The notes under the pieces were generated by a model. That model was not told where the DNA came from. It worked only from the letters and a program-made list of their open reading frames with translations, and did no database searches. A stretch of 64,000 nt of DNA from Macrostomum lignano (lineage: Eukaryota), in NCBI GenBank assembly GCA_002269645.1, contig NIVC01000870.1:1-64000 (forward strand). Direction: 5' to 3'. Positions 19,289 through 44,370 of this stretch are shown piece by piece. Position numbers and translations under genes: made by a program. The stretch's first letter is position 1; each line of letters opens with the position of its first letter.

Positions 19289-22200
19289 ATGCAAAGCACA
19301 TTATTTCTTACAGTACTTCTGTCCAGTAAGTATCGATGCATCTTCACTGAATATTTGCTAAAATGATTGTTATAGCATTAATCATTTCCTAAAATCTTGC
19401 AGTTTCAACTGAAATCTGTCAGACTGCAATGGTCTTCAATAAAGTGGACAGAATCGTATTAGACTCGACTGCAAGTACCGAGCTTATCAACATAGCGAAT
19501 TCCGAATCAAATATTGACTGCCTAGCTAAATGTCAGTCAAAAGGATGCGCAGCTGCAAGCTTCATCTTGAAAAATGGTACTTGCAAGCTTTTGATCATTA
19601 ATAATGCTTCGAACAACCATGAGCTGCCAGATGGTTTTAGAGACAATGTTTTAATTTCAAAAAGCAACGACTCGAATTTGTGGAAGGCCGGGACGTTTGA
19701 TAAAATGCTGAGAATGAGAGCCAAAGTTAACATGACCTATTTGAGTAAGTATTTGCTCAAACACTGTTCTGTATTCACTTTTTTAAAATTCATTTTATTA
19801 TTTGACGAAATCAGAACGAACAAGTAAGACTGTAAGACTGGCAAGTAAGTAAACTTACTTTAACTAGACTAAGAAGCAGCTGTTTACACTTTCTAACGAG
19901 CAGAAAATACCATATTCTTTCCTGAACAGTAGAAATTAGCAGGATTCTTAATCTCTCATAACAAATTCACAGTTCTCAGAAACGATGATGAGGAAGAAAG
20001 TGAAGGCAACTGCCCACCCTGTGTATCTTTGTGAGCTGAGGTTTCAGCGAAATGGGCATGACTGCTTGTCTCCTCGCTGCCTGCAGGTCGACTATCACTT
20101 TTATTTGCATTAGTGCTCAAAATTACTACCTGTCAACTTTAGACAGCAGCTCTGGGAGGCTGGGCAGCGTGCAGCAGCTCCTCATCAACATTACCGGCTG
20201 CTACCGGATCGAGGTGGGCGGCGCCAGAGGCGGCCCTGGAAAATCTCGCCTTGGTGGTTTGGGCGCCACAGCGTCTGATTGTTTCTGGCTGAACGCTGGC
20301 ACCCGTCTGGCCATCGCGATCGGTCAGGCAGGAGCACCGTCGCTGTCGAGTCTAGCTGGAGCCGGCGGAGGAGGCGGCACCTTCGTGTACACGAACTCTG
20401 ACACTGTCTACAGGAATGTCTCCATCAGCAACTGGAATGTCAGCGACTGCATGCGGGATGGTAGTTCGGAGGCGGCGAGCTGCTACCTTCTTCTTGCGGC
20501 TGGCGGCGGCGGCGGGGCCTCAAATTTGAATGATGGTGAGTGTAATCAGAAATAAACCCGCGGGTACCAGTCTAACTATAACTTGGGCCAATACTACCAA
20601 ATCAGTCAATTAATTTGTTGCTTTTTTATTTGTTGAATGGAAAAACTAGAAAGGTTTCCATGTGCAATTTTGTTGGAAATATTGTTGTGGTATTCTACGA
20701 GCTAATCAGGCTAGACTGATATTTATATAATATAGAAGTGCATTAGGAGAACGCTGATGGAAGCAGCAGATAAAAGATGCAGGTTGCTGGCCCACAGGAG
20801 ACCCCAAAAGCCGATGGGCAGACCATACCAGAGCGCTGCACCAGCGTTCGTCGATAAGTCTATGTGAGCTCTGAGCTGCAGCAGCATCGTGGGGCTCAGA
20901 GCAATTTTTGCTTTGCTCGGGCGTCCCGCTTGCGCTTGACGCCCTGTAGCGCTAGGCGCACACTACTAGGCGTGGGTGAGTCAGGTCTTCCCGTTTGAGC
21001 CAGGCAACTGCATGTAGAGATCTGCATGAGGAATTGCCTCTTGTCAGGCCCTAAGAGTCAGCTGCGACGGTGAAGTCATCACAAGGTAGTTGCAAATAGT
21101 TTGGTGCCTGTTCCCTGCGGATCATCATTTGCTTGACCGCTTTAAAAAGCCGATAGTAAATGGTGACTTCTTTGGCGTCGGCTGGGAGAATATGTGCTTG
21201 ATTTGCACTCTCGGAATCATACCGTAACCCTTTCAGAATCAGAACTTAGCATTTGACTGTAGTTCCTCTTTTCACATGACTAGCTTGTTACGAGTATATG
21301 TCCGTCGCACGATAAGGCGGTCTCTGACATAATCTTGGGATTTAAAAGGCTAGAAACTGGTGCTGGTGGTGGTGGTTCACCGGTGATTCCTGTAGCCAGG
21401 AGACGCTGCTCTATCGTTTAGTTTTTTAATCTTCTCTTGTCATCGCATGTTCACTGGCCGGGTGATTGTCTTTGCGAATTCAGCAAAAATGTGAAAAGTG
21501 ACAAGTCCTGCGAAAGAATAATTGGTGTTAAACTGATGCACACTGACCGACCGTTTTTTTGGGCGGCTGTGCCTTTGGCTATTGAGGGCGTGTCTCGTTT
21601 GTGCTTTCTGGTGGCAGCAGGTCCGTAGCTAGCAGCGGAAAGTCGCCCACCGAAAAACTGTCGTGCTATTTTATACAGGTAACCTCGTCAAAGCGCATGA
21701 CCGTGACATCTCCACCAGTTCTCCAATATGAACACTTTACTCGTAGCACGCTGTAACCCCCATGAAAATTTATTGCTCTGCTACTAACGCCATCTAGCTC
21801 GTAGTAACAAAGTAATGTGCCTAAGCTCATTGGTGCGATCCTAAGGCTTAGAAATTTCATAAAGTTTCCATGAGCGTTCTTAAAAGGGGCTCTCAAAGAC
21901 GCACTTTTATTTATCGATCTTTCCTTTATAAATATATTTTTAGGCATCGCTGGCCAAGCTGGTACGTCCGGAACAAATTCCAAAGGTATTTTGACTAGCA
22001 GCGAAGGATTTGGCGGCTCCAATGGGAATCCGGGATACTTAGATCCGGAGAAGCGTTTCAGCACAAATGCGCACGGCGGCTGCGGCGCAGGCTGGCTTGG
22101 TCGTGCCGTAAATGCTCGAAAGTTGAGCATTGATGGCGACCACGGAGGCGGCCTCGCTGACGGCTGGCTGGGCGGAGTTACTGGTAACGATGGTACAGGA

Positions 22201-22434
22201 GGCGATGGGGGCTTTGGTGGTGGCGGTGGAGGCGGTAACAATGCTGGAGCTTCTGGAGGCGGCGGTGGTTTTAGCGGTGGAGGAGCCGGTGTCGGCTACA
22301 CCCAGGTCGGTGGTGGCGGTGGCTCTGTCTGCTTCGGAGGTGTCAGTTGCAGCATCAAAACTGCTGGCAACTCTGTTCGCGAGCAAGGCTTCGCGACCGT
22401 GCAACTGTTGAATTATCTGGCGTATGGTTGCTGA
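19289..22434 (+). CDS. Secreted PAN/Apple + ALK/LTK-like glycine-rich domain protein, paralog 1 (420 aa)
   Basis: Exons 19289-19325, 19403-19744, 20143-20535, 21944-22434; all introns GT-AG phase 1; total 1263 nt. Signal-like MQSTLFLTVLLSIS, PAN CLAKCQSKGCAAASF..C, GRD motifs YRIEVGGARGG, LAIAIGQAG, GGGGGTFV, LLLAAGGGGG, GGFGGGGGG, GGFSGG. AATAAA at ~22443. Confidence 0.88.
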
Positions 22435-24419
22435 TGAGATCGAATAAAAACTTTGTTGTAATACTTGTAAGTACGAGAAGTTTGGACTGCAGAAGTTATA
22501 ACTCAGAATTACGCTCGTAGCAACAAAATATTATACCACTTTATGAGCGAATGAACTAAATTGTCAGCCAGTGCAAGTCATTACATTAAGAATTAAGTTT
22601 GATTGATTTCATTGACGGTTCCTATGAATCTTGAACTCAATGCGCGAAAGTGAGCCTAGCACCCTCCTAGCCCTTTCGTAGCTTTAACACTTAAAAACGT
22701 CAATGATCGTTCGAAACCTGTTTCGATTACTTTCCTTCTCTTTATAGTTCTCTTTCTCTTATTATTTCATGATTTTCTAAAATGTATTCTCGTCGGTTGT
22801 GTGATTTTATGAATTAATTTCCATGTAAGGTATGTAATATTGTTCTTGACACTTTGCTTTCCTTTTAAATGTTTCTTGAAAGTTTCTTGTTACTACCTTA
22901 CGTAAGCTTTTTTGTACTGTAGGAAACCTAAAATGTTACGTAAATTATTAAATTAATAAATATACCACAGCCTACCGTCATATTTCCAACCCCCCCACAT
23001 GTTTAGCCCAAATGACTGATAAACAAAACAAAAGAACCAGCGCCTGGCTTTCCAATTCACTTCGTTAAATGAAATCCTTTTAAATTGAATAGTTATTTGA
23101 TGAAGTCCTGGACAAGCCTGTACAGCCCTGCGGAATAAAATCCTATCACCTTATCAAGTATTCATTCTTGTCCCATATTAACAGGGCTAATAAATCCTCG
23201 CTCTGGAACGATCTATTAAGGGAGAGGGCGCAGAAACGATCAGAGTTACCAAAATTTTCGCGAATGAACCGCATTCTATAGGTACTCGAGGTAAGTGGAA
23301 GAAACAGCGAGTCTGTTTTAATTGGAAAATGGCTATTAAATGCTATGCTGTGAAACTTTACTTTCCACTCCAAACCCAAAAAGTTAAAGATAATTCATCA
23401 GTTTTGTTTTTAGATTGCTACCAGACTAAAAAAGCCAACCTTTTTACGTCGAAAACCTTTCTATATTCCCATCTTTTTCCTGGCTCTAACCCTTTGCTAT
23501 TATCTTCTTATCTGCACTTTACGTTTTTCCAGCTCTCATCTGCCTTTTTAGCCTTTGCTGTTTTATTTCGTAGCTGTTTTGACGTTAGTAACGTTCATCG
23601 CCTTCTTACCCTCCGCTTTCGCAAAATCCCTATTTTCGCTTGATATATTGACGTTGAATGGTCTCTCCTCATGTGCTGATGTGAAAAGCATTTCCCTTAA
23701 TGCTAAGGCTACTACAACTATTCCACAGAAACTCTACCCCGTCTGATTCGCCATATTTTATCTAATGCAAAAAGTTCGTTTTATCACTTGATATTGGACT
23801 ATCATCACTCGCAACGAGTGCTTCAACAGCAGCTGCATCCTTGAAAACGGTCTTGTCGCGCTTTTTGCGAAATCATTGTATTTTTTGCTCATTCAACAGC
23901 TGCTTCAACTGCACTTATCGAGTCTGCAGATACAAAAGTGCCCGTTTAAATATCCTCATGTAGCGTTGGACTTAGCCGTTAACTCAAAATTCAACATTGT
24001 CATAATTTTTTAGAGCATGTGTCTGCATTTTCATTGCATCAATGTGGCCATTCTGGCCTATGACATGACATTTTCTATGACATTTTTATTTTAGTAGACG
24101 GAATACAAACAAAGCAACAGGACAAAAGATGCGCATACAATGTGTTTTTAAAAGTTAGTCAACAATTAGTCAGTTGAGTTGCCGTTAACGCGCCAAATTA
24201 TTCATTATCAGACATTGAGTCCGCTAGTTGTTCAGGCCTTAAAAATCAAACGTACAATTTTGAAATGTGCCAGAAAATTTGACACTGATCGTTGAAACGA
24301 GCAAAGGCGTATTCGGTTGGCCTTCAGCTTGATAAACTTCGCAGGTACCTACTGATTTCTTGATTGACATTACACCAGTAGGGCCCACACGCTTAACGCA
24401 CACGGTCGACGTACTAGCG

Positions 24420-25035
24420 TCAACGAACGGCTTCGGACATAGCTCTAAAGTCGGCGTCTCTCCTAATCCTTGAGTATCGTTCTACACTCACCGGGTTCTT
24501 GTGACCAGTGCTGCAAACGATCGCGGAATTCGAAAATCCATGCACCTTCAAAACAGTAACGTGCGTTACACGAATGCAAGGATTCGTGTATCGCTTAGAG
24601 AGCCCCAGTTTAGTAGAAAGTCGACTCATCAGTTGATCTATCGTGTTCTTGCCAACCGTACGGGAGCCACAGTACCAGCGCTTATCCGATATATCTTTCA
24701 AAACGTTGACACACGTTTCTTGTGTGTATGTGACTGGCCATAGACTAGCTGTGGGTACACGTTTCTTGACACACAAGCAACTCGATTTTAAGATTGTGCT
24801 GATTGTTTAGGCACTGAAGGTACATCTTCAATGCAGCAACAGGACAGCTCCTATTTTCAGACTCAGAGTACATGCGTGCTTGTTTAGTATCCTGGAACTC
24901 GGTCTTCTTCAGAGATGTCCTTGAGTTCTTACTCAGAAAGTCATGTTTCAGGGCGACATAGTCGCGCCCCTCAGAATCTTGTAGAAACGCGAAGCTTTCT
25001 AAAGTTAGAGTTGGTAGAGTTTCTCGTCTTTGCAA
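24420..25035 (-). pseudogene. Crypton-like (DUF3504/KCTD1-type) tyrosine recombinase fragment
   Basis: SCPVAALKMYL, WYCGSRTVGKNTI, YTNPCIRVT (canonical TNHSLRAT), TGHKNPVSVERY with the catalytic-type Tyr; frameshift between ORFs 24745-25035 and 24420-24776. Confidence 0.75.
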
Positions 25036-25596
25036 TCAAAAGTAGTAAATTAGATGAAACATGACCTCGTCTTGCAGTACGACTTATTAGACCTATCAAA
25101 ATAATTTATTGATTTATCGGTAAATAATAATCGCAGCAAATTCCTCTCGAGATTTAAGCTGATTAGCCAGCTTGTACTTAGGCAGTCTTGCATGATGGCA
25201 TCGTAATTAAGAATTGACAGGCGCAGTTAACTATGACTTGGTTGCAATTTCAACAATAAAAACAATCAATACGTTTTTTCTGAAAGCGCGACTAAATTCA
25301 ATCGTCTTTCTTGACATGCGCGCACTTATTTTTTATTGAAAAAAATTCGCATGCTTCAAATGCCGATAAAGCAATCCTGATATCAGTGTTTACGTCCGTC
25401 TAGTGTTTCATTAGTTAACTACGCATATTATCTTGGCCTCGCTCTCAGCCGTCACAGCCAATTCACTTTTTGGTGGTCCTGGACTGCGCAAAAGCAAACA
25501 GATTTTCCTTACACTTTGGTATAAATATAGAGCGCTCATCAGACAGCACTAGCAATACTATTTTTTATCAAAGATTTACCGACTATATACCAAACC

Positions 25597-26383
25597 ATGC
25601 AACTTCAAGTGTTTATATTGTCGATGCCAATGTTGTGCTCTGCACTGCCGTCACTGTACCCCGCACCAGCACAAGAGTCAGTGGGCAGCTCCTACTGGCT
25701 CGATCAAGGTCAGCGCGAAATTCGTCGTGTCGAACACGAAACTATCCGATCCTTGTTGAAAAGTCGTGCCAAGCACGTGGTATTGTTTATTGGCGATGGA
25801 ATGGGCGTCAGCACCGTGACCGCTGCTCGAATTCTCAAAGGCCAGTTAGAGAACTCGTCCGGCGACGAGGCTCAACTGTCATTCGAGCGATTTCAGCACA
25901 CGGCCCTGGCCAAGACTTACAACACTGACTACCAACTGCTGATAGCGCCGGTACCGCCACCGCCTTTCTAACGGGCGTGAAAACTCGTAGTGGCCTTCTT
26001 GGCGTCAATGGCAATGCCATTCGCGGTAACTGCAGCTCACTTACTGACGAGACTCGGTTGACTTCGTTTCTTAGAATGGCCGCCGATGAGGGTCGGGCAG
26101 TCGGCATCGTGTCCACCACTCGATTAACCCACGCGACACCAGCAGCGGCGTACAGCCATTCGGTTGATCGTGGATGGGAATCTGATTCGTCTTCGACGAG
26201 TGACGATCGGTCCCGATGCCCCGACATTGCCCGCCAAATGCTCCTGAACGCTGCTGACTATAAGGTCATCCTAGGCGGTGGCAGGCAAAACTTTTTGCCA
26301 GAAGAACTCAAAGGCAAGCGAAAGGACGGCGCTAATTTGATTCGCGAGTGGCAAGCTAAACAGGTGAGTTGAATAACAGGAAT

Positions 26384-26461
<78 letters not shown>

Positions 26462-28199
26462 ATAGGGTGCAATAGTGTACACCCTTAACGTACGAGCGTA
26501 CAGCCTACAACACGTTGAGTCGGCGACTGGCACCCCCGTAGCTAACTGCCAGTTCAAATGGAGGCTTATGAGTTCTGAGCTTTGGTGTACATGGCCTCTA
26601 AAGTGTTCACAGTGCTCAAGATAGCAGGAATCAGTTAATAAATAAACTTGATAAAGTTACTACAGTGAGTCATAAAATTCATGAAAAGTTATCAAGCGAA
26701 AAACACCTGATCCCTAATCCAGGGCAGTCTGAATTGCAGTCGTAGAGCCTACATCGAGACCCGCAACCAGCTGCTGGATCTGGAGCCAGACAAGGTCGAC
26801 TGCGTGCTGGGCCTTCTGTCCAGCTCGCACATGGAATACCACGCGGAGAATATGATGAAACAAAACCTATCAGAAAGACAGCCAAGCCTGGCAGAGATGA
26901 CCACTAAAGCTCTGGAGCTGCTGACTGTCTATGGCAAGGACACTGGACTCGTTTTGCTAGTCGAAGCTGGGCGAATCGACCACGGTCACCATGGAAACCA
27001 AGCTAACCGAGCGCTGCACGAAACAGTCGCACTGTCCGATGCTGTCGAAGCCGCTGTGCAATTGTTGAAGCAGAAGAAGCTTCTTGACGAGACGCTAATG
27101 ATTGTGAGAAAGATCATTTTTGCTCTATTTTGATGGTACACGTGTATTTAATTCTCACGATCCTGCACTTTTGTAGTTACTGAGCGCTGGTAGAGCAGAA
27201 GGTTTATGGAAGGGCTGCGCTGCGCGCTTACTTGAATGTAGTACAGAACTAAGATATCTTTAGCAAGAAGCAACGGAAGTGGTTTGACAAAAATGGCAGT
27301 AGTTGAGTACAACAACTTTCATTCCCTACTCAATCTAATTCCAATACAAACCATTTTTAGTATATGGAAGAATGCCAAAGAATGTGTTCTTGGGAAAAAA
27401 TGTCATTAGAAGATTTTTGGAAGGAGGACTTTAAATCAGAGATTTTTTACAAGAAAACGACTGGAAATGCTTGTAAGAAACAGCTTGTTTCGAAATTCAA
27501 ACTTTCTGTCTTTAAAGGTCACAGCTGATCACAGCCACGTGTTCACCATGGGTCACTACGGGTTGCGCGGCCAGCCAATCACGCAGCTGAAGTACAAGCG
27601 TAACGCCACAACTGGCCGGTTGCAGCTTGACAAAGCGGGCGACGATCTGCCCCTAACTGTACTTAACTACGCAGATGGTAGGGGGGCGTCAAAGTCCCGA
27701 CACGATAGATGGAGTATCAATGCACCTGCTGAGGACACCACAAAGGCCGATTACCAGTGAGAATCTGAACTAATTAATGTGATATATGCGATGCGTGCAC
27801 TGCATGAGGACGATTTCTCTAGAAGGCGCTGCGTCTTGGTGCCCACACCTTTCTACGAGTATTTATTTTTTAGGTGGAGCATCTATATCAACAAAAATTA
27901 CACTTGATTTGCTGCATATATCCTGCAGATTCCCAGCCATGATGCTGAAAAGTGGAGAATCTCACGGTGGCGAGGACGTTCCTGTATTTGCCAGAGGTCC
28001 GGGCTCTCACCTGGTTCAAGGGGTTCACGAGCAGACCCACGTTGCTCACGTAATCATGTACTCGGCTCACCTCGGCCCGTACGCCAGTTCGCAGCGAGAA
28101 TCTTTTCAGCCGACTGTGGCGCCCAACATCAAAAGCGCAATTTTTGTCAACGCTGCTTACATCTTCAAATTGGTGTCTGGTTTTGTCGGCTTCGTTTAA
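25597..28199 (+). CDS. ALP: Alkaline phosphatase (~552 aa if repaired), with a 1-nt deletion at ~25935
   Basis: Exons 25597-26363, 26723-27103, 27518-27756, 27929-28199. Motifs [18 protein letters not shown] (Ser codon 25944-25946), [31 protein letters not shown]. Signal peptide and hydrophobic, GPI-signal-like C-terminus. Confidence 0.93.
26387..26458. repeat. (AG)n microsatellite in ALP intron 1
   Basis: Directly visible. Confidence 0.97.
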
Positions 28200-29361
28200 T
28201 TTACTCAAGCGATTCATTTTCCTAACTAATTTTGATATGTTACGTAACCGATTCTTTTTATAATTTTGAGCTTTATATTTTGCCGGATTTCAATATAAAT
28301 CTATTTCACAGATTCAACGACTAATTGTTTACTTCTATACGATTTGCAACTTCAATTCGTATAATAACCTAAATAACAAGAATACCAATTACTTTCTTTC
28401 ATTTATCAGTTTCTTTTCTGTAAGCATGTAGTTCTTTTCAACTATTAATTACCAACTAATAAACGTTCTACCCCTATTCAGAATTTACAAAGCAAATTTT
28501 GGATGCCTTCATATGAGTAATTATACATTTTTGCGTTCTATTTGGTGCAAACTGCGTTCAATTAGGTGGGACACACGCAGCGGAAACGAGCCAAGCCGAA
28601 AGACTCTCTCACGTCCACCAAGCTGATTTTGAAATAAGGGCCTTATCCAAGGCACAGAGACTGTACATGCCTGACATCTAGAAAGTCTGTTCCGCTGTAC
28701 AGCCTGTCTGAACATCTGTTTGAATGCGTGCTTGCGTATTGGTGCGCTCAAGAGGCAGCAGAATGGGCGAATGATCAGAACTGTGCGATGATGTCGCCAA
28801 AGGCGCTGCTAGCTGTAGGGTGCCTGCAGTCCAGTGAATATTTTATTGTTGTCAGCACTAAAAAGTAATGAAAAAATCCATTAGTATAGATTACACATTG
28901 CTGCTGTCCAATACTGTGAATAGCTAACATTGCCGACAGTTGATTTTTTATCAGGAACGTGCAAAGTCGAGCGAATCCTTGATACTTCGTACATCAATCC
29001 TTAGCTAAAATGCCGTGTTTTGGACAGGAGAGGCTTCATAATTTTATAAAGTTTTTTGGGAGTTTGTTTAATCAAGAATCTTAACTAGCTCCTTTTGTAA
29101 CAAGTCTGTTTTTTAACGCACAAGTGTTTCAATGTCCTGAGGGGTTCATGGCCATAACTGCAGCTGTCAGCTTTAGCAATGGAAGAGAGCGAGTCTGCTC
29201 CTTGTTTATTCAATCTCCCCAGCAGACGCGGATAGGCTGTCAAGTCAAGTCTTTTACGAGCTCGTATTTTCCTAAACTGAGCCACCTCCGAGACAATTAC
29301 ATCCGGACGATTACATCTTCGATGGCGCGTCTGTATCGTGAAGTCATAAACGTCATTGTGC

Positions 29362-31304: not shown

Positions 31305-31447
31305 GCGCTTTGAGACCTACGAGCCAATCAACAAACGTGCGAACCTGCGCTTGAGACCTACGAGCCAATCAACAAACGTGCGAACCTGCGCTTGAGACCT
31401 ACGAGCCAATCAACAAACGTGCGAACCTGCGCCTGAGACCTACGAGC
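31305..31447. repeat. 41-bp tandem repeat containing CCAAT (tgagacctacgagccaatcaacaaacgtgcgaacctgcgct) x3.4
   Basis: Unit starts at 31311, 31352 and 31393. Confidence 0.9.
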
Positions 31448-32037
31448 AATAAACGTACGAACGGCAATTTGGCCACTTGTAAGACGCCTGCTGCTTGAGT
31501 TCATTATTTTCTGGGGAGCTTGTTAGGCTGCAGGGATTTCTTGCCAGAGCGTCCTAACGCCGGGAGAGCATATAGCGTATTGTAGCACTGTACCGCCCGC
31601 ATAACATTTTAACGTATCGGGACGTCACAGAAACGTCTCGTATAGGTATTTAGTGTCACGTTGCCGATACGTAATTTTTTAGGTGACCATTACGTCCCCT
31701 GCAACGTTTTTAATCTACGTTTCTAATTGGTCCAAATTATACTTACCGATAACGTAAGGATTAGACGCTCCGACGCATGTGTTTGATGTAATATTGTATT
31801 ATATGTACTTGGGTGCAATCTATCAGTCCTGATTTTTTCTGACTGCGTAACTGATTAAGAAATTATTCTATATACTCAATCAACGTAACGTAGCCTCGGC
31901 TTCTACAGAATATTTGGGCCCAATAAAAATATAAAACTCCAATTATAAAATATAATCCACCAGTGCAAATTAAGTCAGAAATAAAAATAACCAATTTGCG
32001 TCTAGATTTAATAAGCAGAAAAAGTTCAACAAAAAGG

Positions 32038-32219: not shown

Positions 32220-32246
32220 ACAAAAAGACAGTTTACACTTGTATAT

Positions 32247-32835
32247 TAGGGCGCATTCACAAAGAAATAATTAAAAGCATTAGGGCGCATTCACAAAGAA
32301 ATAATTAAAAGCATTAGGGCGCATTCACAAAGAAATAATTAAAAGCATTGGGGCGCATTCACAAAGAAATAATTAAAAGCATTGGGGCGCATTCACCATC
32401 AAGTAACTAAAAGCATTGGGGCGCATTAAGAAAAAGTAAAAGCATTGGCGCATTCACCATCAAGTAATTTAAAGCATTAGGGCGCATTCACCATCAAGTA
32501 ACTAAAAGCATCGGGGCGCATTAAGAAAAAGTAAAAGCATTGGCGCATTCACCATCAAGTAATTAGAAGCATTGGGGCGCATTAAGAAAAAGTAAGAGCA
32601 TTGGCGCATTCACCATCAAGTAATTAGAAGCATTGGGGCGCATTAATAAAAAGTAAGAGCATTGGCGCATTCACCATCAAGTAATTAAAAGCATTGGGGC
32701 GCATTCACCATCAAGTAATTAAAAGCATTAGGGCACATTTACCATCAAGTAACTAAAAGCATTGGGCGCATTAAGAAAAAGTAAAAGCATTGGCGCATTC
32801 ACCATCACATAATTAAAAGCATTAGGGCGCATTAA
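32247..32835. repeat. ~30-34-bp minisatellite (aaaagcattagggcgcattcac...), ~18 copies in variant units
   Basis: Directly visible. Confidence 0.92.
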
Positions 32836-32836
32836 A

Positions 32837-33345
32837 TTAATCACTTTCACCATCGGCGTCTTCATCTAGATCTAAGTTACTCGGCCCAGCTTGATCCTCA
32901 TCGTGAGTGTCGCTGTTATTAAGGCTCGTATTGTCGTTGGCACTAGGATCAGCCAGGGCTGCCGCAGAATTGGGGTCAGTGACTTCGTTTTGAACCGCTC
33001 TACTGGTTGATTGCGCTTTCTTTGTCATCCTTTTAAGAATCTCGCCAATAAAAAAGAACGGCCTGTTTCACTTAAATAAGTTTTTAGGCAACAGACGCTT
33101 TAGTCTCTTGTTGCTGTGAACGACATCTACAAAAATTCAGCGTATGAAATTTAATTAAGAGATGAGAGTGATAATTTGTGGATTTTTGGTGTGAGTTTAT
33201 TGGGATGTAGGTTGTACTCACTAGAAATGCACTGGGCTACAGCTTCAGGAAGCGGCTTCTTTGATCCACACCCTTTGATATTAAAATGTTGGAGGGTTTT
33301 AGCGTTTGCTGTCGACAGCAGCATTGCAGTAACAGCCTCGGACAA
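32837..33345 (-). pseudogene. Spliced fragment resembling a BEN/DUF4806-like transposon accessory protein
   Basis: LLSTANAKTLQHFNIKGCGSKKPLPEAVAQCIS, gtgagt donor, ttgtag acceptor, then VVHSNKRL...FIGEILKRMTKK and an acidic tail; frameshifted. Family call is from pattern memory only. Confidence 0.3.
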
Positions 33346-34173: not shown

Positions 34174-34775
34174 GGCAGTGCTTATCCCCACGGTACCGTA
34201 GGAATAATTTCTGTCTTATTCTAACGGTACCGTGCGAATAATTTTCTGCTTATCCGCACGGCACACTGACGAGATAGCTGCCCTATCTTCTACATATGCC
34301 GTGGGAATAATTTTCTGCTTATCCGCACGGCACACTGACGAGATAGCTGCCCTACACGTCCTCTGTTTTATTCCCTCTGCTTTACTAGCTGCCCTATCGG
34401 TTTTTATCTGCTACATATATATGCTGTGCGTGAATAGTTTATAGCTTATTAAAAGGGAATTTGAACTGAGGATACTAAGAAGCTGTTGATCTTGATGATG
34501 TATAAACTTGAATCAGTTCTAGACTAGTATATGCATGTGTAAATGCGTGTTATTCTGCTTTACTGATACCCTTCTGTATACTTATTCAACAATAATTCAA
34601 CAAAGTTGTTATACTGCACTCAAATCGTATGTACTAAACTTCCCACACGGCATATGTAGAAGATAAGGCAGCTATCTCCTCAGTGTGCCGTGCGGATAAG
34701 CAGAAAATTATTCGCACGGTACCGTTGGAATAAGACAGAAATTATTCCTACGGTACCGTGGGGATAAGCACTGCC
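34174..34775. mobile_element. Mutator/MULE-type MITE (602 bp)
   Basis: Long TIRs (~135 bp) starting GGCAGTGCTTATCCCCACGG; perfect 9-bp TSD taaattata at 34165-34173 and 34776-34784. Confidence 0.9.
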
Positions 34776-35590
34776 TAAATTATAAGCTAGTCAGTATTGA
34801 ATAAGTTAAATCGGGCTAAATTAGTGATCTTAACGCAGAGCACAGTTAGTAAAAGTGATGTTGATCAATAGTCATCTATTAGCACCCTTAGTCCCTTAAA
34901 TAAACTAAACTTCTACTGAGCATATACGACCTTAAGACTGACGTCTGACGGAGCTAGAGAACAAGCATGTGTATTGTGGTAGGTCGAGCTACCACTCCGA
35001 GCGAGATAATTTCGTCAGATGGTGAAATTTCTATGACTCCCTTTTTGTCACCCAGTGCGCCGCCCTTTGCCCCATCCCTCGCCCCATCTTTGGCCGAAGT
35101 CGTTTTTTGTTATTTCCCGTTTTCGTTGCAGTGTCGTCCGTTGCCCCATCGTTTGCCCCATTCTCTGCCCCATCCCTTGCCTTGTCGCCCCATCTGTTGC
35201 CCCATCCCTGTCCGGACGACACTTCCTCTATTTATATGGCCAATTCGGGCCGCCAGCTTTTATCTTCTTCTTCTTCTGGCCCTTTATTACCTGGTTCTTT
35301 GTACCTTCTCCTTTGTTTCTTTCTTTTGTTGGTTTAACTTAGTTTAGCGCTTTGATTTTGTTTTGGGTTAGTTAATTGGCACCCGGCACCGGCCGCGATC
35401 ATCTTCGTTGAAAATAACATTCTAATTTAATCAGTTAATATCATCTGCTAAAAGTAAATAAACATAATAATAATTCCTAATAACGGTTCGTTCGTTAATC
35501 GAAGCCCTTAATAGTTTGCTGGTAGAGTCGCTCGCTTGGCGAGAAGAATAAATAGAAAGCTTAATATCAACATTTGAATATGATTTCAAT

Positions 35591-35648
35591 TTCTAACAAC
35601 TTCAACGCGTTTCGCACGCCATGGTGCATCGTCAGGATTTTATTAGAA
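35591..35648 (-). ncRNA. Identical hammerhead ribozyme in the inverted 5' copy
   Basis: Exact reverse complement of 37831-37888. Confidence 0.85.
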
Positions 35649-35725
35649 CGATTTGAGAAATTGAGATTGAACTCGAATCTGTTGTCAGTAAGTGCCTCTC
35701 ACGCAGCAACACGGAGAACAATGAG

Positions 35726-37546
35726 ATGCACCACCCCCCTGATACTTTTAGGAGAAAAATCATTGCTGAATTTGAAAACTTTGTTATCAAAGCCACCAAC
35801 TGCCTTGTCAATAAGAAAAATAAACTCCAACACCGTACTCTCAAACAGTTAAGCAAATCTGACAAAATTAAAATCGTTAGTTACGACAAAGGATATGGCG
35901 TGGCCATTCTCAATACCGATGACTATAACCACAAACTCCACAGTATCATCCAAGACCAAACCAAATTCCAGTGCCTGGGCACTCATGACACTGTCACCAT
36001 GTCGCATCCCATCCTCAAAGCCGAACGATCTCTTCAAAATTTCCTCCGCAACCATATCAAACAACACATCGAACCAAACATCTATCAGCGTATCTTACCT
36101 AGTGGCAGTCAACCGGGACAACTCTACGGGGTTTGTAAAGTCCACAAACCTGACAATCCTCTTAGACCAATTGTCTCCATGGTCAACACCGCCGAATACG
36201 AAGTTGCCAAGTACCTGGATTCTCTTATCAAGCCCTGCATTCCTTCCAATTTCATGTCCAAATCCAACAAAGACTTCCTCAATGACCTTCAAAAGTTCAA
36301 CCCTACGCTCAACAGATCCGACTCTCTATGTAGTTTTGATGTTGTTTCTCTCTTCACCAACATCCCCCTTGATCTGGCCATTGACTATGCCACTGAGTTG
36401 GTGTACAACACGAACCCTCCCACCATGGCCAAGTCGTCCTTTAGAAAACTCCTGGGCTTTGCTACCTCTGGAATCTTTATGTTTGACAATAAATACTATA
36501 GGCAAGTTGATGGCTGTGCCATGGGAAGCCCCTTGGCCCCCACTCTGGCGAACGTCTGCTTGGCCCATTGGGAAACCGAAAACTGGATGTCTCTCAACTG
36601 TGCCCCCAAATTCTACAGGCGCTACGTCGACGATACGTTTGCCATCTTTGATCAGGAGCAAAAAATTGATCAGTTCCTCCACGCTCTCAACTCCACTCAT
36701 AAGAACATAAAATTCACGGTTGAACATGCTGTTGACCAAAGACTCCCCTTCCTGGACATTGACATTGACTACAGTAAGGAAACCCTCTCCACAAAAGTCT
36801 TCCGTAAGAAAAGCTTTACCAATCTCATTCTCAACTTCCAAGCCACTTGCCCCAGACAATGGAAAACTGGGCTCGTGAGGTGTTTGCTCCATAGAGCTTT
36901 CACTACCTGTAACACCTGGATCAACTTTGACCGGGAGGTGCAGTTCCTCACCAGACTGTTCCATCAAAATGACTACCCCGTTTGTCTGGTCCAAAAAATC
37001 GTCAACAAGTTCATCTCGGACAAAATCACCAAACAAAAACCTGAGCAATCTGTCACCACTGAAGAATTTGAACCCATTCTGCGTCTCCCCTTCCTCGGAC
37101 CTCCATCTCTAGCCTTTAAAAACAGAATGCGTAGGTTATTCTTTGCCTCTTTCAATCGTAACATCCGGGTCGTCTTCCACACGAACAAGATTGGGAACTT
37201 TGTTAGCAGATTAAAGTCGCGTGTTCCTTGTACTCTGCGTGCAGGTGTTGTCTACCAATTTAACTGCTCTGTGGACCAGAACGTCTCCTACGTGGGGAAA
37301 ACCAAAAGACACCTACACACGAGGATCAGGGAACACTGGCTCAAACCATCTGCTATACAAACTCACCTCCTTGAATGCACTAACTGCAATGACTGCAAAC
37401 CAGAAGAACACTTTAAAATCATTGACCAAAGCCATACTGACGCCAAACTTAGAATTCTCGAGGCCCTGCACATAAAAGCTCAGACCCCGAATCTCAACAC
37501 CCAATTACAACATAGTGGTGCAGGTCACGTTCTCCGCGTTTTCTGA
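35726..37546 (+). CDS. PLE reverse transcriptase + GIY-YIG endonuclease (606 aa, uninterrupted)
   Basis: DKG, LYGVCKVHK, PLRPIVS, SFDVVSLFTNIP, QVDGCAMGSPLAP, RRYVDDTF, LPFLD, YQFNC...YVGKTKRHLHTRIREH, EALHIK...PNLNTQ. The frame is open back to the inversion junction at ~35672. Confidence 0.96.
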   Translation: MHHPPDTFRRKIIAEFENFVIKATNCLVNKKNKLQHRTLKQLSKSDKIKIVSYDKGYGVAILNTDDYNHKLHSIIQDQTKFQCLGTHDTVTMSHPILKAERSLQNFLRNHIKQHIEPNIYQRILPSGSQPGQLYGVCKVHKPDNPLRPIVSMVNTAEYEVAKYLDSLIKPCIPSNFMSKSNKDFLNDLQKFNPTLNRSDSLCSFDVVSLFTNIPLDLAIDYATELVYNTNPPTMAKSSFRKLLGFATSGIFMFDNKYYRQVDGCAMGSPLAPTLANVCLAHWETENWMSLNCAPKFYRRYVDDTFAIFDQEQKIDQFLHALNSTHKNIKFTVEHAVDQRLPFLDIDIDYSKETLSTKVFRKKSFTNLILNFQATCPRQWKTGLVRCLLHRAFTTCNTWINFDREVQFLTRLFHQNDYPVCLVQKIVNKFISDKITKQKPEQSVTTEEFEPILRLPFLGPPSLAFKNRMRRLFFASFNRNIRVVFHTNKIGNFVSRLKSRVPCTLRAGVVYQFNCSVDQNVSYVGKTKRHLHTRIREHWLKPSAIQTHLLECTNCNDCKPEEHFKIIDQSHTDAKLRILEALHIKAQTPNLNTQLQHSGAGHVLRVF

Positions 37547-37830
37547 ACAGTGAGTGACACAGTCGTGCACGCTGTGTACACTTAGCTTGACGTTCAATTA
37601 CCTAAGCTAGCTACCGCCCCTGATTCTGCCTTTTGACCACTGGACAAGAATTGTGTACATTTGGTTTAACTTTCATTCTCAATCTATAATTCTCTCTCCT
37701 ACCTACTATACCTATGTATGTTGTTAAAGCCAAGTTGTAATCAATTGTTTTCAATCTTACCCTCCTTACCTGTGTACGTTGCAAAAACCAATATTTAATC
37801 AATCGCTTTCAATCTCAATTTCTCAAATCG

Positions 37831-37888
37831 TTCTAATAAAATCCTGACGATGCACCATGGCGTGCGAAACGCGTTGAAGTTGTTAGAA
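37831..37888 (+). ncRNA. Type I hammerhead ribozyme in the PLE 3' terminal repeat
   Basis: Stem I ttctaataaaatc / gaagttgttagaa (11 pairs, 2x2 internal loop); core CTGACGA 37844-37850; extra U; stem II gcac-catggc-gtgc; GAAA 37866-37869; palindromic stem III acgcgt; GUU triplet with predicted cleavage after 37875. Confidence 0.88.
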
Positions 37889-39362
37889 ATTGAAATCATA
37901 TTCAAATGTTGATATTAAGCTTTCTATTTATCCTTAATAGTTTAACTTGAGTCATTTGCCCGTGGGGCGTTAAACAACCAATTAATCTCATCTCCGAACG
38001 AGCTCTGAAATCTCAACGTTCCGTAATACGCAATTACAGTGGTGGCAGCGCTACTCTACTGATAGTAATCAGCTCAACAACTCCGAAACAGATTTACGGT
38101 GTCTAGACCATTGAGTCTAAAGTCTGAACGACCGTGCCGCTCACGACCGCTCGACTACGATTACGACTACCCTCCCCCCGGACTTTAGAACCCGGCAGTC
38201 GGAGTAAAACAGGAGGAAATAATTCGTTGCGATTCGTCTGCGCGATTTCCGGCTCTATTCGTGCGAACTCAACGTCGGCGGCAATTCAAACGTGGAATCC
38301 GCCCCACCTCACTGGTGTCAGCAAATTTAAAAAACCAACCAATATTCCAAGAAAACTTCCTCCGCCCCACCTCAGTATCTTATGTTGTGCTTCAAATTGA
38401 ATTTTTGTGAGGAACACGTAACACGCGATTGAACAAAAACAGTTCTGCTACTTTTATAGCTCAGAGCTTCTAAATTTTGCATTATTTAGGGTTATCCAAG
38501 TAAGTTGTGCATTTTTTTGGCATAAATACTTAATATTCTAAAGATAGCCCACTGCTGCCATGCCAACACAAAGCTAGCCCTTTTGGACGTATGAAATACG
38601 TAGTTTTTGATTATTTTAAATACGTATCTAAAGCGTCACGAAATTTCGTAATTAACTAAATTGGCATGCTGTATAGATTTTTCGCTCCTAAACTAAATTT
38701 GTACGACTTTTTGTAGCTGCAAAGGTGATTTTAAATGTTTTTTTTTGCGATAAACGATGTAGAAAATATTGGAGCAAAAATTAGGTAATTTTGTGACGTC
38801 CTAGCAACCTTACAGATACGTTAAATTGTTATGCGGGCCGGCTACTGTATACAGTATGTAAAACCTACAGTATCGAGACTAGAAGCACTCGAGAGTGTCA
38901 TCACACCTCGAGCCGCAGCGTGAACTCTGAGCGTCACAACACCAGAGGGATCGAATTATTATCACAGAGCGTCGTCACGCCTGCTCGTATCCATAAAAGT
39001 ACAAGACAGAGCGCCTGTATATTACGTATAATAAATATTGTACTCGGGACTGGGCACCCAAACCGACCCGGGTTACAGCAATACAACCGAAAAAAAAACA
39101 ATTTTTAAGGCAACTTGCTATTTTATTGCCCTAAAATCCAGTTTATCTTGTTAGGAATAAAAACAGATCGATGGCAAATAAAACAAAAATGAAATATTAC
39201 CATTTCATCCAATAACCACCAGCCAATCACATTCATTCTGCGCGGTTCCAACAGGCTAAAAGCGCTGAAATTCTGTAAACTTTCACTGTTAAAACTACTC
39301 TGTGAGAAATTTCCCCAACTCCATTTTCTCTGAATTCAAACTACTCAAACTACATTCAGAGA

Positions 39363-41327
39363 ATGACTAACTATCTTCTCGTTACAATCATTTTGTGCAT
39401 CTTGGGTAAGTACTGTGTTTGACTACTTTTTTCTGTCAACCAATAAAACAAAAAATAACGATAAAATTTTACAGCCTCAGCTCAAGCTCAAACCGGAACG
39501 CTATTCCAAAAATTTGTTGAGCCCATCCATCTCGATGCCACAGTCAGCAGCACCGTCATCAGTCTGACCGGCTCAGACTCAAAGATCGACTGCGCAGCTC
39601 GGTGCCAGAGTTTCCGCTGTGCCGCTGCGGTTCACATTCCGCTGAGCAGCGTCTGCCAGGTGCTGATCATTAACGACGCTTCTGAGGTGCCTGGACCGCC
39701 TGGGAGTCACGTGACTAGAGTGGTCGGAGCGCAGTCTGGGACTGCCGCGTGGAGGGCGGCTGATTTTGACGACATACTGAAAACCAGGACGAGGGTCAAT
39801 CTGACCTTTCAAAGTACGTGTTGTCCTTTTTGCATGCAACTAAATCATTTTCGTTAAACAGATGTAATAAATAGACCATTCAATGTAGACAATTAGGATT
39901 GGCCACCGGTTTCAATACGGTGGGAGCCGCTTAACACGAGGCTGTCGATTTCAATACACTAATTGGTGCTGAATTCAGCAAATCTGACACTACATTTAAG
40001 CATTCAAAAAAGGCACTTTGAATTTCGATTTCGCAAACCAAAAACCATTCAGACAGCAGCACTGGGAGACTGGGCAGCGTGCAGCAACTCCTCATCAACA
40101 TCACCGGCTGCTACAGGATCGAAGCAGGCGGCGCCAGAGGCGGCTTCCGCACATATCGAACTGGCGGCTGGGGCGCCACGGCCGCTGGCAGTTTCGGGTT
40201 GACCGCCGGAACTCGCCTGGCCATCGCTGTAGGTCAGGCCGGAGCTCCGTCGCTGACGAACCTGGCCGGAGCTGGCGGCGGAGGCGGCAGCTTCGTGTAC
40301 ACGAACTCGGACACTGTCTACAGGAATGTCTCCATCAGCAACTGGAATGTCAGTGACTGCATGCGGGACGGTAGTTCGGATGCGGCGAGCTGCTACCTGC
40401 TGCTAGCGGCTGGCGGCGGCGGCGGCGCCTCGACCTACAAGCACGGTAAGTTCGTTTTTCGAGAAGAGGTACATGTATACTGGCGCCAATATAGCTGGTA
40501 ACTCATCGCGAAATACACGAAGTTCTTGTTTTCAAGATGTTTTTTTTTTGGGGGGGGGGGGTGGAGGCTATTTCACAGAATCAATTTGCTTGCACATGAG
40601 GTTGCATACGCCTGTTAATTCAACTGGCATTTTGATTCGCCAGTCTTTCGTCGTCGCTCTATCAAAGGTCAAAACAACTAGCCTCCAGCGAAATATTTTT
40701 ACGATTTGTAAATGAATCGTTTCGTTCTTTTCAATGGTTGTAAATATTTTTAAACCGACGCAAGATAAACGAGTGGTAGAGCTATTGTGTCGCTGTCTAG
40801 TTACAACTTGCTTTTAATCTTTACTATTTATAGGTTTACCTGGGCAGTCGACAAACTTCGGTGCCGACTCATTTGGTACGCTAACGACATCCGTCGGACT
40901 GGGCGGCACCAACGGGCATCCCGGATACGTTGATCCCAGCAAGTCTTTTCGGGACAATTCTCACGGAGGCTGCGGCGCAGGATGGCTCGGTCGAGCCGTA
41001 CACGCCCGACGATCCGGCATCGACGGAGACCACGGAGCCAGCCTCGCGGACGACTGGAAAGGCGGCGCCGCCGGCAACGACAGCAAAGGAGGCGTCGGAG
41101 GCTTCGGCGGTGGCGGAGGAGGCAGCAACGATCCGGGCGCCTCCGGCGCCGGCGGCGGCTTTAGCGGCGGAGGTGCAGGCATCGGATTCGATCAGGCCGG
41201 TGGTGGCGGTGGCTCCGTCTGTTTTGGAGGCGTCAGTTGCCTCGCCGTCACCGCTGGCAACGCTGGTCGAGAGCAAGGCTTTGTGACCGCGCGGCTTTTG
41301 AACGATCGGTCGGCTGGTTGCGAATGA
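39363..41327 (+). CDS. Secreted PAN/Apple + ALK/LTK-like glycine-rich domain protein, paralog 2 (422 aa)
   Basis: Exons 39363-39405, 39475-39813, 40053-40445, 40834-41327; all phase 1; total 1269 nt. Signal-like MTNYLLVTIILCILASA, PAN CAARCQSFRCAAAV..C. Exon 4 has no Met in frame, so it is missing from the ORF track. Confidence 0.88.
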
Positions 41328-42091
41328 TTCCACGATGTGTCACTGAGCCGAAGTAGCAATGGAATTCCAAAAAACAACAACGCTTGATTGACAAGAAGTG
41401 AAACGTAATTTAACTCTCGATGCAAAATATACGAGCGTATGGTCTACTTTAATTTTCTATAGCTAGAACATTTTTATTGCAATAGTTATTCGTTAACCAA
41501 TCAGTCGATTCTTCTGTGCATAAAATTCCTCTAAAAATTTGCATATTGGATTCGAACATTTCCTGTTTTTTTATAAAAACCTTGCAGACTTGACTGAATC
41601 TCCTATTTAATACCATGCAGACTATGCTATTGCTGCCGGAAAATGCACACATATATATATATATACGAGTATACTCCTACTGTTGACTTTTATCTATGAC
41701 CAAAACCATAACACTGGGCGTAGCCATACTGTCAGCCATATAGACAGTTGTCTATTCCGGCATGTGAAAAACTTGTTAATTGATTATTTGCAACTTCGCA
41801 GACCTTGTTTGCCGCTCATTTCTGCGGCATATGCTGCCCTCAAATCCACAGACAGATCATGTGCTGTCTCATTCTTTTAAGGGCATCGACCATAGACAAA
41901 AGTGTCGGACAGAGAATCTATTCCTGTCCACTTTTAAGCTACGACGCTCGTAATCTTGCCTGGCAAAATTTTAGGGGTGTGGGGGTGAAACATCCAGTTC
42001 ATACCATAGACAAATGATTTTATCTGATCTGACCCAATTAACTGACAGTCACTATGTCTGGCTAAGAAAATGTCAACTTAATGGAAATATA

Positions 42092-42705
42092 CCTTTTTGC
42101 GATCTTGTTTGCCAGAACTGCAATCAATTTTGCCAAAACTGCGACCCAGTTTGCCCATAGCAAGCCAAGAAGAATTTTTGTTGAGAATTAATTCGGAACT
42201 GTGACGAAATAAACTGTAACAGTGAACAATAAACAGTGAGTTTATAATGGTAGACGTAGGCACAAATGCTCTCAATCATAGCATTGTTAAGGGACCTCCG
42301 CTTGGCACCTCCGCAAGGCAGAGACTCTATACGACCGGTTGCGTTGAATTGTCCAACTATGTAAGTCACGGTTCTTCGTGAGATGCCCAACAGCCTACCG
42401 AAACCTTGCCAGTCTTCTCCATCCTGATATGCTTGAATCAATCGCTGCCGGTCCTTCGCTGAAATCCTCTTATAAGGTCCACGCTGGGCTATTCTTTGAT
42501 CTTTCTATGTATGTCTGTGGTGTTTTCTTTGCTATGGGCAAACTAGGTCGCAGTTTTGGCAAAATTGATTGCAGTTTTCAAAGAGTTGTCTGTGGCTGAA
42601 ACTCTGGTCATGACTGAGCAGACTTGGCATAGACAGCAAAATTATAAGTGATATTTTTCCGCGGGCAAAATTGATTGCAGTTTTGGCAAACTAGATCGCA
42701 AAAGG
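42092..42705 (-). mobile_element. Tc1/mariner (IS630-like) deletion derivative with an HTH remnant
   Basis: TIRs cctttt(t)gcgatct.gtttgcca.aactgcaatcaattttgcc with TA on both sides (42090-42091, 42706-42707); internal IR 42116-42162 / 42530-42576; ORF 42124-42441 LLGISRRTVTYIV...GRIESLPCGG. Confidence 0.8.
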
Positions 42706-43340
42706 TATAATAGATATCACCCTAGCTGTAAAAAGTCTAAGTAAGAGTAAACTTAAGGGCAGACTCGAGGGGTATTCTCGAGTATGTCTATGGTGAACCA
42801 ATATTAAAAGCAAAGACTGCTGGTTTTATGCAAGCTAAGCGCCGTTCCTGAAAGCTGTCTCTTGCATCAGCAGTTTAGATTGTTGTTATAAAGAGCCCCT
42901 TGCCACAAAATAAACTTGATTGATAGCAGACATTTTTTATGTATCCAGATTTTTGCTGAATTTCATACTGGGTTTTTTAACAGAATCTACGTTGTAGGCA
43001 CGTACGAGCCTAGGTAGCAACAAGTCCGCACTTGAACAATAAACCACTCGGGTAAAAAACAAGAGACATTCAACCTTGTCTGTCATTACTCTGGTCTGGT
43101 GGTCTGGATTTTTACTAGCAGCTGTCAATTATTTTACAACTGAATTGGGCTGTTTAAATTTGCCAAAATCAGTAAACAAAATTCCACAAGATTCAATGTG
43201 AACAGTCTAAACTTTTCTGCTTCATTTTTTGTAAGAAATATCTATTCAATTCTTGACATGTATATTATACCTCGTAGATATAGTAGGTCCGTTTAGTGAT
43301 TATCAGTTTCAATTTTCCTTAATTGTTGACACGAGTACAG

Positions 43341-44370
43341 CCTCAACTAAAGGTCAAACCGAAAAGCTTTTCCTAAAAGTTGTCAAGAGTCCATCCATCT
43401 CGATGTCACAGTAGTCAGCAGCACAATCTGAGCAATCTGCCATTCCGCTGAGCAAAAATCCATACAGCTTGAAAGTTCTATGAAGCAGATGTCATTGTAA
43501 CTTTACGATTCAATATTGATATAGCCGGTCTACGTACGTTGGTTTTCTACGATTCTACTACTCATACTAAAACAGTATGTAATAATAATTTTTGAAATAA
43601 ACTTTCATAAATTTCATTAGCAAGATGAAAATACATCTCTTCTGGCAATATGAATCTGAAGTTCTCACCCTTTAAATTTCCAGTCTGCAAGTAAAGTTTG
43701 CATATACGATAAATTGCATGCATATACGAGCGTAGTATTAGTTCGCCAGCTTGCAAATGAAAATTCTGGAAATATAATATTGGATAGAGCAAACGGATTG
43801 GAGGGAGATAATTGAGATTGGGGGGAGAGGGTGGAGGTCAGAGGGAGAGGGTAGATCAGGGGAGAGAGGTTGGAGATATAGGAGGAAGAGTAGAGATCAG
43901 AGGAAGAGGGGTGTGGGGTGTGTGGAGATCAGTAATTAATTCGTTCGGGAAGTTTGAAATCGTAAACCCGCGGTTTCGTAAATTCATTCAATAATGTAAT
44001 TTTAAAACTTATTTATAACTTATTTCTCCAATGTTTCGCTGCGGCACGCTGCATGGACGATTCAGCACAACATCGGTTAGAGTTTTATAACTAAATTACA
44101 TTGTACATGTACAAAAGTTGATTCCAGCAAGTTCTAAATATATTTAAACAATACTCCAGGAGGCTGCTGTGCAGGGTTGCTCGGCCAAGTAGTAAACTCC
44201 TGACGGGCAAAAGTAGTGACAACGATCCGGGAGCTTCCGGTGGCTGCGGCTTCAGACGTGAAGGTGCCGCTTTGAGCTTGATGGAGGCGGAATTCCGTCT
44301 GCTTAGGAGCAGAGGTTGCTTCACCGTGACTGCTGGCAACGCCAGTCGAGATCAATTCTTTTGTGACTGT
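43341..44370 (+). pseudogene. Decayed third PAN/GRD paralog
   Basis: 43341-43460 aligns to paralog 2 exon 2 (acag|cctca...ccatccatctcgatg.cacagt); 44150-44370 aligns to exon 4 (ggaggctgc, caacgatccggg, ctggcaacgc, gtcgaga) with deletions and frameshifts; exon 3 not seen. Confidence 0.8.

Follow-up and report, generated by a model that had tools for sequence, protein, structure and literature searches.

So far, studies of the TNF-like/glycine-rich (TG) domain have dealt almost exclusively with its cytokine-binding role in the oncogenic receptors ALK and LTK. An epidermal growth factor (EGF)-like module is also part of the ligand-binding region of these receptors (PMC10605310). A TNF-like and glycine-rich tip that resembles SCD-2 has furthermore been proposed as the receptor-binding end of a fibre of phage Pam3 (PMC9608196). 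Here we analysed a stretch of 64,000 nucleotides (nt) from Macrostomum lignano (contig NIVC01000870.1 of assembly GCA_002269645.1, positions 1 to 64,000 of the forward strand), which is called the window in the following. It contains spliced eukaryotic genes and many transposon remnants, and harbors a locus in which the TG domain occurs without a receptor. Two intact genes, gene 1 and gene 2, share the same layout of a hydrophobic leader, a four-cysteine PAN-like module, a complete TG domain and a stop codon. We consider it probable that they are two functional tandem paralogues which, together with one dead copy, represent an old eumetazoan family of secreted, kinase-less proteins.

Gene 1 (19289-22434) and gene 2 (39363-41327) are both located on the + strand, consist of four exons and encode proteins of 420 and 422 amino acids (aa), which end with ...LAYGC and ...SAGCE directly before the stop codon. 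All introns have GT-AG borders and are in phase 1, and the two proteins are 64% identical. The earlier note on this DNA, which was made from the letters alone, had described two four-exon genes of this kind and a pseudogene, and the number and phase of the exons, the protein lengths and the ends were confirmed. The exons and the signal following gene 1 are:

19289..19325, + strand: gene 1 exon 1, ATG and hydrophobic leader (MQSTLFLTVLLS), phase-1 donor
19403..19744, + strand: gene 1 exon 2, PAN-like module in one phase 1-1 exon, C-x3-C-x4-C-x11-C
20143..20535, + strand: gene 1 exon 3, N-terminal half of the TG domain with the TGCYRIE strand and a lineage-specific Cys-loop insertion
21944..22434, + strand: gene 1 exon 4, C-terminal half of the TG domain with GFATVQLL as its last strand, then ...AYGC and the TGA stop
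22443..22448, + strand: AATAAA polyadenylation signal of gene 1, 9 nt past the stop, read directly from the sequence
39363..39405, + strand: gene 2 exon 1, leader MTNYLLVTIILCIL(A), phase-1 donor
39475..39813, + strand: gene 2 exon 2, PAN-like module (used for the exon-2 structure model; sub-threshold PAN_1 score)
40053..40445, + strand: gene 2 exon 3, N-terminal half of the TG domain
40834..41327, + strand: gene 2 exon 4, C-terminal half of the TG domain, then ...SAGCE and the TGA stop

An in-frame stop is present 24 nt upstream of the ATG of gene 1. The splice choices are supported because the spliced proteins of both genes could be aligned to their relatives without gaps over both junctions, and because the NSS motif at the junction of exons 2 and 3 and the split-codon Gly259 are in conserved alignment columns. 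Each gene is assembled from phase-1 exon modules, namely a leader mini-exon, one PAN exon and two TG exons. Exon 3 shows 84-85% DNA identity between gene 1 and gene 2.

Because all matches of the single sequences to Pfam and to the Protein Data Bank (PDB) were below threshold, a profile was built from the gene 1 and gene 2 proteins and 38 relatives. Exclusively ectodomains of the ALK family were retrieved from the PDB with this family profile (ALK 7nwz, E 2.3e-11; SCD-2 7lir, E 5.5e-9; LTK 7nx0, E 1.3e-5), and the match to LTK 7nx0 spanned chain residues 31-314 of 322. The relatives P0027, P0112 and P0087, which are linked to the window proteins at E 1e-18 to 1e-22, pass the cut-off of the Pfam family ALK_LTK_GRD (PF12810) with 34.3, 28.2 and 26.5 bits. 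We also examined an AlphaFold2 (AF2) model of the M. lignano relative P0004, for which the confidence measure pLDDT (predicted local distance difference test) of the TG part was mostly 85-97. In a Foldseek search of the PDB, the best 21 matches of this model were all TG domains of ALK, LTK or SCD-2 (E 3e-11 to 7e-7, template modelling (TM) scores of 0.5-0.65, 19-25% identity), followed by the fibre of cyanophage Pam3 (gp24, 7ypx) with E 0.05. Sequence profile and model thus agree on what the earlier note had seen, a complete domain of the ALK/LTK type. It is well supported that the C-terminal domain of the predicted proteins is a complete TNF-like beta-sandwich carrying a polyglycine lattice, and that this is the fold of the ligand-binding region of ALK/LTK and of the distal tip in some phage tail fibres. 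In both genes the stop codon follows 12-13 codons past the last TG strand.

The translation of exon 2 shows the cysteine pattern C-x3-C-x4-C-x11-C, which is invariant in all relatives and is in register with the cysteines of coral domains that pass the cut-off of the Pfam family PAN_1 (PF00024). PAN_1 was matched by three of six flatworm-type N-terminal domains, the best with E 0.0017. For the exon-2 translation of gene 2 an AF2 model with a pLDDT of 78.6 was obtained, and the PAN modules that matched it in the PDB comprised the HGF N domain, plasminogen PAN, the PAN domain of a fungal copper oxidase and the Sarcocystis lectin SML-2; the factor XI A4 domain and leech antiplatelet protein appeared a few ranks lower. 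The module contains four cysteines in gene 2, and gene 1 has an extra N-terminal Cys18 without a C-terminal partner in the module. The Apple subtype has six cysteines and is defined by a third disulfide, which connects the two termini of the domain. Since this third disulfide is missing, the label Apple is not justified for exon 2; of the PAN/Apple domain claimed earlier, the PAN-like part stood with the four-cysteine core, the PAN structures as top matches and the sub-threshold PAN_1 scores. With moderate confidence, exon 2 encodes a divergent PAN-like module with four cysteines, which would form two disulfides.

In both genes the leader occupies its own mini-exon and contains a hydrophobic stretch of 9-13 residues. 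The highest hydropathy over 19 residues in gene 1 was found for residues 5-23, the gene 2 leader fits the -3/-1 rule (ASAQA, with cleavage before Q), and the relatives begin with similar leaders. The products of both genes are, therefore, predicted to carry a signal peptide.

Several observations weigh against reading the two genes as secreted PAN-TG proteins. With PF12810, gene 2 scored 10 bits (E 0.86; cut-off 24.5 bits) and gene 1 gave no match, and in phmmer searches of PDB sequences with single window proteins the best match had only E 0.65 (SCD-2). Glycine-rich composition is penalised in single-sequence searches. The TG structure was modelled on a proxy, P0004, which is 43-48% identical to the window proteins and was the closest complete relative usable. 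PAN_1 matched gene 1 with 15.3 bits (E 0.018) and the domain of gene 2 alone with 13.8 bits (E 0.052), both below the cut-off of 21.4 bits. The top 26 Foldseek matches of the exon-2 model in the PDB were all PAN modules but marginal (E 0.02-0.5, probability 0.9-1.0), and hhalign linked the window-type N-terminal domain to the coral PAN domain only weakly. The predicted signal peptides are based on hydrophobicity and the -3/-1 rule only. Finally, no description, expression or functional report for the kinase-less PAN-TG family was found in the literature.

We also searched for receptor parts. A 19-residue hydropathy heuristic, in which the N-terminal leader scored highest, gave no transmembrane helix beyond the leader; the sole other 19-residue segment with a value of at least 1.6 lies inside the PAN module of gene 2. 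An ALK kinase domain as query gave a best E of 1.2 in tblastn over the 64 kb, and the kinase motifs HRDLAARN, DFG and SDVWS were absent from all six frames. When 120 family proteins, several of them bearing EGF modules, were used as tblastn queries, the two genes and one low-complexity repeat were the only matches in the window. The earlier statement that the genes stop without EGF module, transmembrane helix or kinase was thereby borne out by tblastn, motif scan and hydropathy. Downstream kinase exons were considered as well and were rejected, since there is no kinase or EGF coding potential in the 64-kb window.

These data also bear on the question whether the gene models are incomplete, with further exons elsewhere that would turn them into true ALK-like receptors or larger multidomain proteins. 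The gene structures are known here from genomic sequence alone, and no canonical AATAAA was found within about 400 nt past the stop of gene 2, which would both fit such a scenario. On the other hand, the stops are at the same structural position as in the proteins of cnidarians and Macrostomum, among them the NCBI models for Nematostella and Actinia, the AATAAA of gene 1 is located only 9 nt past its stop, and the next + strand gene past gene 1 encodes an alkaline phosphatase with a leader of its own. Together with the lack of kinase or EGF coding potential, this makes incomplete models highly improbable.

ALK (7nwz, 7n00, 7ls0), LTK (7nx0, 7nx1) and SCD-2 (7lir) have the same TNF-like and polyglycine fold as the TG domains of the window. 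The window genes differ from ALK/LTK by a PAN module upstream of the TG domain instead of MAM/LDLa, and by the lack of the EGF-like module, the transmembrane helix and the kinase. The TG domain is 19-25% (about 22%) identical to ALK, LTK and SCD-2, whereas it is 41-52% identical to secreted proteins of cnidarians. We concluded from this difference that the window genes belong to an ancient paralogous lineage and are not shed or truncated copies of a receptor.

The earlier note had offered a soluble ligand trap as one possible function: the secreted TG domain would sequester the ligand of an ALK-type receptor and thereby damp signalling. The fold of the ligand-binding region of ALK/LTK and a protein that is predicted to be secreted and has no signalling part speak for such a decoy. 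However, the identity values place the domain in an old separate lineage, and the EGF-like module is missing, which in ALK/LTK is part of the region that binds the ligand (PMC10605310). Moreover, the family is an expanded one in which genes are born and lost (at least 14 entries from Macrostomum, and a tandem copy and a pseudogene in the window), and this would be unusual for a trap dedicated to a cytokine. The TG module is also frequent in bacteria and viruses, which have no ALK system. A decoy function is, therefore, very unlikely.

The closest database relatives of the window genes are from Macrostomum lignano, and at least 14 Macrostomum entries were among the matches listed. A near-identical sequence was not found in the databases. 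P0001 (UniRef A0A1I8GEH1) matched gene 2 with E 1.8e-66 and 45% identity at 95% coverage; P0003 is A0A1I8I814, and P0004 (A0A1I8HRN4) is named 'Apple domain-containing protein'. Like the window genes, the Macrostomum PAN-TG proteins have a leader, the four-cysteine PAN-like module, the NSSTGR motif, the TGCYRIE strand, HGGCGAGW and a cysteine in the C-terminal tail. Family members show 45-49% identity in aligned columns. Unlike the window genes, these relatives do not have the Cys-loop insertion of about 22 residues.

PAN-TG proteins were also found in cnidarians, namely in Porites (P0027), Stylophora (PFX14163.1, P0112), Pocillopora (P0031), Actinia (XP_031570383.1, P0087) and Rhopilema (P0091). 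As predicted for the window genes, these proteins are secreted and kinase-less, with the TG domain at the C-terminus and the end of the protein directly past the last strand; 41-52% of the TG columns are identical between the cnidarian family and the window proteins. The ALK_LTK_GRD cut-off was passed by four anthozoans (Porites, Stylophora, Pocillopora and Actinia), the PAN_1 cut-off by Porites, Stylophora and Rhopilema, and both cut-offs by Porites and Stylophora. Unlike in the window proteins, PAN and TG are separated in the coral proteins by an additional module of about 55 residues, and some have EGF repeats at this position. The TG loops of cnidarians are longer (GDSVEVKGGQST...). In a coral locus the TG domain is encoded by a single exon, compared to two exons in the window genes; the exon boundaries are in phase 1, as here. 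The relatives from Nematostella that are named 'loricrin' are TG proteins without PAN.

PAN-TG proteins are an old and uncharacterised eumetazoan family. Judged from the available relatives, the compact secreted PAN-TG protein dates back to the ancestor that cnidarians share with bilaterians. The earlier description of the family as lineage-specific could, therefore, not be upheld, since the same layout of leader, PAN and TG is present in Macrostomum lignano, Porites, Pocillopora, Stylophora, Actinia and Rhopilema. The locus is a tractable entry point to the questions of what the TG domain bound before it was linked to a kinase and how the ectodomain of ALK was assembled. Relatives are present in Macrostomum lignano and Nematostella, and in Macrostomum both RNA interference (RNAi) and in situ hybridisation are routine methods.

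Many of the closest matches are metagenome proteins of about 300 aa. A bacterial origin of these proteins was considered and rejected. In the cluster that was checked, P0018 on Tara contigs, the upstream exon encodes the Porites-type spacer module, and P0018 is therefore cnidarian DNA in which the single-exon TG domain was called as a gene. Its exon boundaries are in phase 1, too.

The spread of the TG module extends far beyond this family. An exhaustive profile search retrieved 4,930 clusters (50% identity) at E<=1e-3 and 1,246 at E<=1e-10. Giant proteins are frequent among the TG clusters and carry as many as nine copies of the module. A kinase domain was absent from all ten top matches that were sampled. 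The partner domains in the sampled top matches were EGF together with C-type lectin, FN3, and, in bacterial surface proteins, SprB repeats with a type IX secretion system (T9SS) sorting tail or DUF285 repeats. Ig domains are present in two of the listed relatives, and one of these two also shows, by eye, a stretch that is collagen-like. Three PF12810 proteins are mentioned in the literature for the fungus Drechmeria. Among predicted viral structures (BFVD), 100 matches at E<=1e-3 were obtained, the best with E 7.7e-16 at 28% identity, and they include virion and tail-fibre proteins of phages and collagen-like proteins of giant viruses. These viral fibre proteins resemble the window proteins in having a C-terminal TG-type head, which is the proposed receptor-binding tip there. 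They differ in being trimeric, in having helical, collagen-like or other stalks, and in the absence of PAN and of introns. We concluded that TG is a binding head of extracellular proteins that is widely distributed.

Several kinase-less TG proteins (P0006, P0010-P0014, P0019, P0031 and entries of BFVD), phage proteins among them, carry the automatic names 'receptor protein-tyrosine kinase', 'loricrin', 'PE-PGRS family protein' or 'putative lysozyme-like protein'. For genome annotation this means that such automatic names reflect a domain rule or glycine richness and not a function.

The dead copy lies downstream of gene 2. The pseudogene remnants and the exon 3 tract that is nearly identical in gene 1 and gene 2 are located as follows:

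43336..43424, + strand: exon-2-like remnant of the pseudogene, with a retained splice acceptor and an in-frame TAG but without the PAN cysteine core
44148..44367, + strand: exon-4-like remnant of the pseudogene, deletions and several stops
20381..20488 and 40291..40398, + strand: near-identical exon 3 tract (about 108 nt), 96% identical between gene 1 and gene 2, synonymous sites too

The exon-2-like piece is 82% identical to 39470-39553, the start of gene 2 exon 2 (blastn), and the similarity ends after the TAG. The exon-4-like remnant consists of three blastn pieces with 76-77% identity to exon 4 of gene 2, and tblastn gave 42% identity over 57 aa. No remnant of exon 3 was found by blastn or tblastn. 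An intron-sized gap has been kept within 43336-44367, and the stops, the deletions and the missing exon identify this copy as an unprocessed (duplicated) pseudogene.

Between gene 1 and gene 2, exons 3 and 4 gave ratios of nonsynonymous to synonymous substitutions (dN/dS) of 0.18 and 0.24, respectively, which indicates that both genes are under purifying selection. The dS values were 0.52 for exon 3 and 1.0 for exon 4, and dS was saturated for exon 2. The introns that flank the near-identical tract of exon 3 could not be aligned between the paralogues. Gene conversion over a short tract is the simplest explanation for the exon 3 tract and the probable one, judged from the alignment of the two copies. 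The tract encodes the insertion of about 22 residues, NSDTVYRNVSISNWNVSDCMRDGSS[DE]AASC, with two cysteines and two N-glycosylation sequons, which is absent from every relative compared (Macrostomum and cnidarian) and from ALK. This loop, which would be closed by a disulfide and glycosylated, is nearly identical in the paralogues and is a candidate element for specificity or stability.

The proteins contain 6-8 N-glycosylation sequons. The number of cysteines in the mature protein is odd (11 in gene 2), which leaves room for an intermolecular disulfide. The cysteines in TGC, in HGGC and in the C-terminal tail are shared with the Macrostomum relatives and are absent as a set in cnidarians; one coral protein retains the cysteine of the first strand. 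From the co-occurrence in the flatworm-type clade, the disulfide that the earlier note had proposed between the C-terminal cysteine and the cysteine of TGCY is plausible; however, a third clade-specific cysteine (HGGC) is present, and the cysteine number is odd.

These features also fit the main rival to a function in recognition, a structural secretion product that would help to build mucus, rhabdites, eggshell, a cuticle-like apical matrix or a temporary adhesive. We regard it as rather unlikely overall, and so too its proposed molecular basis, in which the polyglycine lattice would act as a rigid, protease-resistant core and the odd cysteine would serve for intermolecular disulfide cross-links. 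The odd cysteine count with the clade-specific C-terminal cysteine, the many N-glycosylation sequons and the expansion of the family in Macrostomum are consistent with a material of this kind. The frequent occurrence of PAN modules in apical matrix proteins of invertebrates fits it as well. However, the proteins are compact, with two domains in about 400 aa, and have neither repeats nor low-complexity spacers. In addition, the TG domain is 41-52% conserved between cnidarians and the animal of the window, which suggests a specific interaction and not a bulk material.

A soluble recognition or adhesion protein is the best reading of gene 1 and gene 2 and a probable one. The leader would route the protein into the secretory pathway, where it would be N-glycosylated. 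Outside the cell it would be soluble and would possess two modules for binding, of which the PAN module may bind a glycan or a protein and the C-terminal TG head may bind a second extracellular partner. The outcome would be recognition, cross-linking or adhesion; the protein would not act as a receptor and probably not as a decoy for an ALK ligand. The putative recognition or adhesion effector that the earlier note had named as its second option is compatible with all observations.

A broader, tentative and rather doubtful extension is that secreted proteins with a TG head form an ancient class of soluble recognition proteins in animals, with a logic like that of C1q-domain or fibrinogen-related proteins. 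They would combine a variable N-terminal module with a conserved jelly-roll-based head, the fold of which is shared with fibre tips of phages and giant viruses. The ectodomain of ALK/LTK would have been recruited from this class by phase-1 exon shuffling, and in this lineage the new gene-converted loop, closed by a disulfide and glycosylated, would be the determinant of specificity.

The remaining part of the window contains other genes, mobile elements and repeats. The alkaline phosphatase gene between gene 1 and gene 2 (25597-28200, + strand) has several exons and a hydrophobic leader; three of its open reading frame (ORF) pieces match the Pfam family Alk_phosphatase (E 2.5e-17 to 1.6e-31), and the best database identity of exon 1 is 54%. 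Two adjacent ORFs closely downstream of gene 1 (24420-25035, - strand) may resemble the C-terminal region of DUF3504/tyrosine recombinases (Crypton-like); a Pfam scan of the ORF at 24423-24776 gave no match. Also between the paralogues, an intact ORF of 606 aa (35726-37546, + strand) shows a reverse transcriptase (E 2.6e-11) and a C-terminal GIY-YIG nuclease (E 2.8e-4, 21.6 bits, cut-off 22.6), the domain pair of a Penelope-like retroelement. A run of ORFs at 47427-50013 (- strand) matched RVT_1 with E 2.2e-30 and contains protease-like and RNase H-like stretches that were seen by eye; it looks like a broken pol of a long terminal repeat (LTR) retrotransposon. A Rfam scan of the window found no RNA gene.

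A large gene extends from 52370 to 63032 (+ strand). One of its exons encodes a FYVE finger (E 5e-18) and another is Cpn60/TCP1-like (E 1.4e-6, 27.8 bits, cut-off 34.3), which suggests a lipid kinase of the PIKfyve/Fab1 type. A homology search with the Cpn60-like exon found nothing. The introns of this gene are rich in micro- and minisatellites, with repeat-coded ORFs at 54.1-54.6, 54.9-55.4, 55.9-56.9, 58.5-59.1, 59.7-60.3 and 63.0-63.8 kb. Two tandem arrays are present in the spacer between the paralogues, one at 31305-31454 with a period of 41 nt and 3.7 copies, the other at 32245-32835 with periods of 34, 61 and 95 nt, about 18 copies and 77-84% matches. Finally, a minisatellite at 11435-12641 gives rise to long ORFs in several frames on both strands (QLDGRCRQVQEQ... 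and PGPAGIDHPAAA...) and caused spurious low-complexity tblastn matches to glycine-rich queries.

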